A stretch of 64,000 bases of DNA from Camelus ferus (Eukaryota): positions 59,086,001-59,150,000 of the forward strand of contig NC_045704.1 in NCBI RefSeq assembly GCF_009834535.1. The letters are read 5' to 3'. The position numbers and the translations under genes were made by a program. Positions 15,519 to 16,709 of this stretch are shown here, piece after piece. Under the pieces are notes generated by a model. The model was not told the DNA's origin. It did no database searches and saw nothing but the letters and a program-made list of their open reading frames with translations. The first letter of the stretch is position 1, and each line of letters starts with the position of its first letter.

Positions 15519-16709
15519 ATATCCTTCAGAGTTCCATCTGAATAGTCACATGCAGTGCAAAAACTACATTTGAGTAAGGAGAACACAGAAGTCAAAATGC
15601 TGTTGTCCAGTCCCCTCAGATCTGCACTCCGTAACTCCATTTATTCTATTTTTAAAACCAGAGAGTTAAATTTCTTAGGGCAAGGACTTGTCTTCATTCA
15701 TCTTTTTTTTTTTAATTTTATTTCATTCAAGTACAGTAGATGTACAGTGTTGTATTTCTGGTGTACAGCCTAATGATTCAGATAATCCTTTTCATATTCT
15801 TTTTCATTATAGGTTATTACAAGATACTGAACATAGTTCCCTGTGCTATGTAGTAGGACCTTATTGTTTATCTGTTTTATATATTGTAGTCAATATCTGC
15901 AAATCCCTCCTAATTCATCCCTCCCCTACTCCCCTTCTCCATGATAACCCTAAGTTTATTTTCTATGTCTTTATATCTCTGCTTTGAAATAAGTTCATTT
16001 GTATCATTTTTTTAAGATTCCACATATAAGTGATATGTGACATTTGTCTGTCTCTGACTTAACTTCACNNNNNNNNNNNNNNNNNNNNNNNNNNNNNNNN
16101 NNNNNNNNNNNNNNNNNNNNNNNNNNNNNNNNNNNNNNNNNNNNNNNNNNNNNNNNNNNNNNNNNNNNNNNNNNNNNNNNNNNNNNNNNNNNNNNNNNNN
16201 NNNNNNNNNNNGTCACCTAGATGTGATCCAAAGTAACTGAAACCCTGCTGTTGATCACAGCAATTAAATAATTTTACATTTATGCTAATAAAATTTCTAT
16301 TTCCTTGCTTACAGAGACCACCCTGTCAGGCACAGAAAGATGGGGAAAGAGTTTTATTAGATTTTTAATCTACTTCCAATGTAAACAATGGTAGTTCGTA
16401 AACTATTTCCCAATATCTATCCCCCTCCCCACCAAAAAAGCATGATGTTGATGTAGTCTGGGGCCTGATTATGGTGACTGATGGCTCCTATAGAAAGGCC
16501 AGTCACACTTTGCAGAAAAACATACACGGAAGATCAATACCCACACTTCATCCCCTAAGCCTGAGCACATGGAATTTGCATTAGATAGAAAAGTACCTAA
16601 AATTGAGCTAATGATGCTAGAGAAGAGATTCTAATTCTAAAATGTTATCTGAGTTTACATATACAAATCATTTGTTCGTGAAAATCATAGTCCTTAATGA
16701 GTATTTTAC
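15519..16709 (+). other. SPAG17: U12-type (minor spliceosome) AT-AC intron of SPAG17
   Basis: Donor ATATCCTT at 15519-15526, branch site TCCTTAAT at 16691-16698, terminal AC at 16708-16709; the joined codon A|CA restores EATVLTSS. Confidence 0.92.
15700..16230 (-). mobile_element. 5'-truncated L1 inside the U12 intron; contains an N gap
   Basis: L1 3' UTR motifs (ttagattccacatataagtgata). Confidence 0.8.

Follow-up and report, generated by a model that had tools for sequence, protein, structure and literature searches.

SPAG17 is a central-pair axonemal protein. Minor introns of the AT-AC subtype, to which the intron described here belongs with near certainty, carry the consensus /ATATCCTT at the 5' splice site (a slash marks a splice junction throughout), a branch-point sequence TCCTTAAC and a terminal AC, and are removed by U11, U12, U4atac, U6atac and U5. 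The branch adenosine of such introns lies approximately 10–15 nt from the 3' splice site, and a pyrimidine tract is not needed.

The closest described counterparts are the minor introns of mouse and human SPAG17, listed in the Minor Intron Database (MIDB) since 2019 (Olthof et al. 2019, BMC Genomics, PMC6717393, Tables S1, S2 and S4; the supplementary tables of this paper are the published form of the database). Table S1 places the mouse intron at chr3:100124246-100125298 (1053 nt) and the human one at chr1:117963939-117966608 (2670 nt), and Table S2 treats both as conserved minor introns of protein-coding genes. The 5' splice site is given there as CAAATATCCTTT in both species (scores 97.9 in mouse and 99.5 in human), and the branch-point sequence as TAGTCCTTAATG in mouse (74.1 of 100) and CAGCCCTTAACA in human (75.6). 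Table S7 additionally contains, in a single tissue column, a value of 0.26 for a cryptic-exon event inside the human intron.

The testis-enriched minor-intron genes are enriched for cilium genes, with Spag17 among them (PMC6717393); Table S4 lists it among the testis-upregulated minor-intron genes under the GO term 'Cilium', and the Discussion of the same paper ties together minor splicing, cilium assembly and sperm-tail defects. Later work describes ciliary defects where U4atac is deficient (PMC9992838) and defective spermatogenesis where U11 is lost (PMC12956336), and the main text of neither paper names SPAG17. A full-text literature search for SPAG17 together with minor introns returned no relevant paper, the listing existing only in supplementary tables, and SPAG17 does not appear in the supplement of PMC2831892. 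The intron had been noticed from its letters in a preliminary description, which offered as an inference a link between minor splicing and motile cilia or sperm. That link was already in print (PMC6717393), and the listing for mouse and human (Tables S1 and S2) makes the intron real and not novel, as the same description had allowed for an intron found in minor-intron databases. The SPAG17 intron is thus an already known and ordinary member of its class.

The window, that is, the whole 64-kb stretch of camelid DNA that was analysed, holds the last five SPAG17 coding exons on the plus strand, placed by tblastn of the alpaca SPAG17 protein (P0157). The limits of the first three are those of the tblastn match and not splice sites.

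About 4747 to 4911, plus strand: SPAG17 coding exon, fifth from last (P0157 residues 2025-2079, 87% identity).
About 10357 to 10554, plus strand: SPAG17 coding exon in which the PapD-like domain begins (P0157 residues 2072-2137, 97% identity; open reading frame 10348-10557).
About 12493 to 12561, plus strand: SPAG17 coding exon (P0157 residues 2137-2159, 96% identity).
15374 to 15518, plus strand: penultimate SPAG17 coding exon, 145 nt, preceded by AG at 15372-15373 and ending in phase 1 (GAA GCA A).
16710 to 16846, plus strand: last SPAG17 coding exon, to the stop TAG inclusive (16844-16846), encoding a 45-residue C-terminal tail.

By homology the gene is SPAG17, as the preliminary description had named it. 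The penultimate exon translates as VAAGLQ...FLPVEA with one extra base A, and its 48 residues, used as a query against 1.84 billion representative proteins, gave 99 matches, including proteins of 2000–2300 residues that carry the exon near their C-terminus. Matches from yak, platypus, crane, paddlefish, spadefoot toad, axolotl, manta ray, amphioxus and limpet are named sperm-associated antigen 17 at their source. All 92 residues translated from the last two exons are identical to those of the alpaca RefSeq SPAG17 isoform X3. The flagellar PapD-like domain (Pfam PF14874) is matched with an E-value of 2.4e-16, its end coinciding with the final residue of the penultimate exon, so that the intron separates this domain from the 45-residue tail; Pfam searches with each exon alone gave no match because the exons are too short. 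Farther downstream, an open reading frame with a Utp12 domain (Pfam E-value 5e-10) at 26150-26395 on the minus strand fits the C-terminus of WDR3, the known convergent neighbour of SPAG17, and the spadefoot toad locus carries a WD40 gene in the corresponding position and orientation.

The placement of the intron between the last two coding exons, as first described, is borne out by a second protein search, which yielded 120 mammalian SPAG17 cluster representatives and is the basis of all mammalian junction counts given below. In at least 84 of the 120 models the protein continues across the GT at 16761, via DFPQ-GKE..., and ends in the same C-terminus, which makes 15519-16709 the last coding intron. 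A good-looking U2 donor, G/GTAAAG, does lie within the last coding exon at 16760-16766 and could serve rare isoforms. The protein encoded in the window ends ...REISP followed by TAG TAG (16844-16849), one codon earlier than alpaca RefSeq X3, which ends ...REISPQ; the residue after ISP is H, Y, Q or E in other mammals, and the earlier stop is probably an inconsequential species difference or polymorphism.

The intron itself shows the following features.

15519 to 16709, plus strand: U12-type intron of the AT-AC subtype, written as 1191 nt with a gap whose length is an estimate.
15519 to 15526, plus strand: U12 5' splice site ATATCCTT, which follows the exon without a break and has no other plus-strand copy in the window.
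16069 to 16211, no strand: assembly gap of 143 N, its length only estimated, inside the intron.
16691 to 16698, plus strand: branch-point sequence TCCTTAAT, matching seven of the eight positions of the consensus TCCTTAAC.
16708 to 16709, plus strand: the AC that ends the intron, its last base 12 nt from the branch adenosine (16697).

A reading of positions 15300-16900 confirmed the letters and coordinates of the preliminary description, from the exon end GAA GCA A at 15518 through ATATCCTT, TCCTTAAT and AC to the peptide EATVLTSS; its length of 1191 nt also stands as written, 143 of these being the N of the estimated gap. Its placing of the AC 'about 11 nt' past the branch motif was loose but fair, as 9 nt separate the end of TCCTTAAT from the AC, and the branch adenosine at 16697 lies 12 nt from the last intron base, 16709. 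The stretch upstream of the branch site, GTGAAAATCATAG, is purine-rich and holds no pyrimidine tract. The last exon opens CA GTT TTA ACA AGC AGC, and joining 15518 to 16710 creates a Thr codon, gives EATVLTSS and leaves the frame open to the TAG at 16844-16846. This join is shared with alpaca RefSeq and with 89 other mammalian cluster representatives.

Compared with the U12 AT-AC class, the intron has a donor octamer that is perfect against the consensus, seven of eight branch positions, a 12-nt spacing and an AC end all alike, and differs in the last branch-site base, which is T where the consensus has C. From the general pairing of U12, a G-U pair would be expected here in place of G-C. Neither motif is unusual by itself: ATATCCTT is present six times in the window against 2.9 expected, with one copy on the plus strand, and the branch-plus-AC pattern three times against 2.0 expected. 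What goes beyond chance is that each of them falls precisely on one end of the protein homology.

The likeness to the MIDB introns extends to single bases. The branch-site 12-mer of mouse Spag17, TAGTCCTTAATG, is identical to window positions 16688-16699, and the human branch site reads CAGCCCTTAACA. The assessment of the splice signals rests on this identity to the scored mouse motifs, and the score of the shared branch site, only about 74 of 100, is a point against the U12 reading. The donor context CAA/ATATCCTT is shared with both species, with 11 of the 12 bases of CAAATATCCTTT in common, three exon bases included; the base after the donor octamer is C in the window and T in MIDB. In size the window intron, at about 1191 nt, is similar to the mouse intron of 1053 nt, the human one measuring 2670 nt. 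Apart from its camelid host, nothing is different in kind, and the window intron is the orthologue of the minor introns listed for mouse and human SPAG17.

A comparison of donor and branch site across orthologues, which had been proposed for mammals when the intron was first described, found the motifs conserved from limpet to a second mammal. It covered the intron ends in orthologous DNA of five animals, as follows.

Limpet (Lottia): donor GCT A/ATATCCTTTC; 3' end and join CCCTTAACTCTTATCAC/CC ATC CTA ACA.
Amphioxus (Branchiostoma): donor GCA A/ATATCCTTTC; 3' end and join TTCCTTAACACTTCTTAC/CT ATT CTA ACC.
Paddlefish (Polyodon): donor GCA A/ATATCCTTTA; 3' end and join CACCTTAACTAAAAGCTCAC/CA GTT CTA ACT.
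Spadefoot toad (Spea): donor GCA A/ATATCCTTGA; 3' end and join ATCCTTAACAGTTCCCAC/CA GTC CTC ACA.
Second mammal (Logan contig): donor GCA A/ATATCCTTTA; 3' end and join CCCTTAATGAGTCTTTTAC/TA GTT TTA ACA.

All five animals carry the A/ATATCCTT donor and a branch site (T/C)CCTTAA(C/T) 10–12 nt before an AC, in the same phase and at the same codon position, and in every annotated species of this comparison the deposited protein is exactly that of the AC join. Between the window and the second mammal, nucleotide similarity within the intron is confined to the first 8 nt and the last 43 nt, over the two motifs, and the two intron interiors do not align with each other.

The donor can also be recognised in protein records. 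The tetrapeptide A-N-I-L is the translation of A/AT ATC CTT, that is, of A/ATATCCTT, and it follows the exon directly in at least 37 clusters of unspliced open-reading-frame fragments from diverse animals, with read-through tails beyond it that are not conserved. In nine further clusters of protein fragments the exon is followed by A-S-I-L. For one of these nine, the DNA is a Logan contig (SRR25569770, positions 1570-1794) that covers only the donor side and continues from the exon into GTATCCTTT, a GT-subtype U12 donor, also given as A/GTATCCTT, in place of A/ATATCCTT. The window intron is of the AT-AC subtype where this contig has A/GTATCCTTT at the orthologous position. The A-N-I-L and A-S-I-L signatures, together with the motifs of the five animals, indicate that the intron is old and has changed subtype at least once. 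Its position and phase, kept from limpet to mammals, place its origin no later than the last shared ancestor of molluscs and chordates, and at least one lineage has switched to the GT subtype.

Which 3' site is used can be read from proteins and RNA. The AC junction is present in 106 of the 120 mammalian SPAG17 models, as ATVLT (89), AIVLT (10), ATVLA (3), ATILT (2) and ATVVT (2); the remaining readings include ANIL... in six models and EAILTSS in one, from a Molossus bat. Additionally, a 6804-nt Logan contig from another mammal (SRR33436782) has an uninterrupted open reading frame of 2226 codons, and must for this reason derive from spliced RNA. At the junction it has GTGGAAGCAA/CAGTTTTAACAAGCAGC, with every base as in the AT-AC join of the window, and its join is also given as GCAA/CAGTTTTAAC.

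An enumeration of all donor and acceptor pairs left three frame-preserving options besides AT-AC. The best of these keeps the U12 donor and takes as 3' site the AG at 16711-16712, giving an AT-AG intron and a protein one residue shorter (...EAILTSS...). This AG lies 3 nt past the AC and 15 nt from the branch adenosine, within the usual window, and an AG stands 3 nt past the AC in both mammals examined (CAG in the window, TAG in the second mammal). The Molossus molossus protein that reads EAILTSS (P0219) is what such a splice would produce. Against it stand the AC junction of the 106 models and of the mRNA-like contig, the complete absence of an AG near the AC in amphioxus and limpet, and the fact that the CAG following the AC is accounted for by the conserved Thr-Val codons. 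We therefore regard AT-AG splicing as a very improbable reading of this intron, and the AG at 16711-16712 as at most a minor alternative 3' site.

The preliminary description had held that no GT donor preserves the frame. This was wrong, since the two other options are U2-type GT-AG introns that use a cryptic GT, AGA/GTTCCA (15531) with the AG at 16712 or CCC/GTGGAA (15509) with the AG at 16690, and both keep the frame free of stops. Both donors, however, match the U2 consensus very poorly, their products (EANILQILTSS for the 15531 donor, another for 15509) occur in none of the 120 orthologous proteins, and the join of the mRNA-like contig excludes both, which leaves this reading hardly any credit. 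As the main splice, the GT-AG and AT-AG readings alike were rejected on the survey of 120 models and the mRNA-like contig.

There is next to no chance, finally, that the exons are not truly adjacent and that the N gap, which has an uncertain true length and lies beside a repeat, hides a mis-join that makes the intron an assembly artefact: the exons on its two sides are the penultimate and the last of SPAG17, in correct order, orientation and phase, with all 92 residues as in alpaca, the second mammal holds both exons on a single N-free contig 1093 nt apart, and the mouse intron is 1053 nt long against 1191 nt here. The gap begins 550 nt from the donor and ends 497 nt from the acceptor; it falls wholly within the spliced-out intron, so it does not affect the reading frame and only makes the length of 1191 nt approximate. 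Exon order, orientation and phase, and the comparable intron lengths elsewhere, thus argue for continuity across it. An L1-like repeat fragment at 15700-16068, also inside the intron, reaches the left edge of the gap and probably explains the break in the assembly.

Some deposited SPAG17 models handle this intron differently. The ANILTSS models (a non-RefSeq yak entry, manatee, porcupine, Myotis and sengi) correspond to a join GCA AAT A/TT TTA, in which the AG 3 nt past the AC is taken as acceptor and the donor is shifted into the intron by 3 nt so that the frame is preserved. The resulting intron would run TC...AG, and these models are therefore best read as annotation artefacts. Mis-handled models with A-N-I-L were observed in P0004, P0155, P0202, P0221, P0230, P0238, P0024, P0031, P0058 and P0096, their sources being yak (ELR56729, non-RefSeq), manatee, porcupine, Myotis, sengi, desman, Umbra and others. 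With this tetrapeptide, phase-1 AT-AC introns that were missed in annotation could be spotted quickly. A separate case is a 61-residue mammal-like fragment (P0002), 87% identical to the exon, which reads FLPVE-QLASGSTELH, with neither A-N-I-L nor A-T-V-L after the exon; this deviant reading could reflect a chimeric contig or a lineage with an altered exon end.

The sequence anatomy, the conservation of the DNA, the junctions of the orthologous proteins, the mRNA-like contig and the database listing together identify 15519-16709, almost beyond doubt, as the last coding intron of camelid SPAG17, of the U12 type and the AT-AC subtype. The preliminary classification thus holds, with all signals present, the DNA conserved in five other animals and the exact join found in an mRNA-like contig of another mammal. 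That the minor spliceosome actually removes the intron in this animal is what these observations lead us to infer. By analogy with the U12 family, the ATATCCTT donor would base-pair first with U11 and later with U6atac, and U12 would pair with TCCTTAAT, bulging the adenosine at 16697. The 3' site would, as in the family, be picked by distance, the AC lying 12 nt downstream of the branch adenosine. Joining GCA A to CA GTT would then form the Thr codon that links the end of the PapD-like domain to the 45-residue C-terminal tail.

A transcript that retained the intron would read EANILQSSI and then stop; the intron being the last, such a transcript would, by the usual rule, escape nonsense-mediated decay. 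The ANIL peptide follows directly from the letters of the splice motif. This geometry suggests, as a speculation to which we give little credence, that minor-spliceosome activity in testis or ciliated cells might act as a conserved switch between tailed and tailless SPAG17. If so, the tailless product would keep a near-identical final PapD-like strand (ANIL for ATVL) and would do so without the 45-residue tail.

For SPAG17, the finding means that the full C-terminus of the protein would need the minor spliceosome, which has little import beyond correct annotation. Its by-products may be useful: the age of the intron and its change of subtype, and a list of mis-handled deposited SPAG17 models, recognisable by A-N-I-L.
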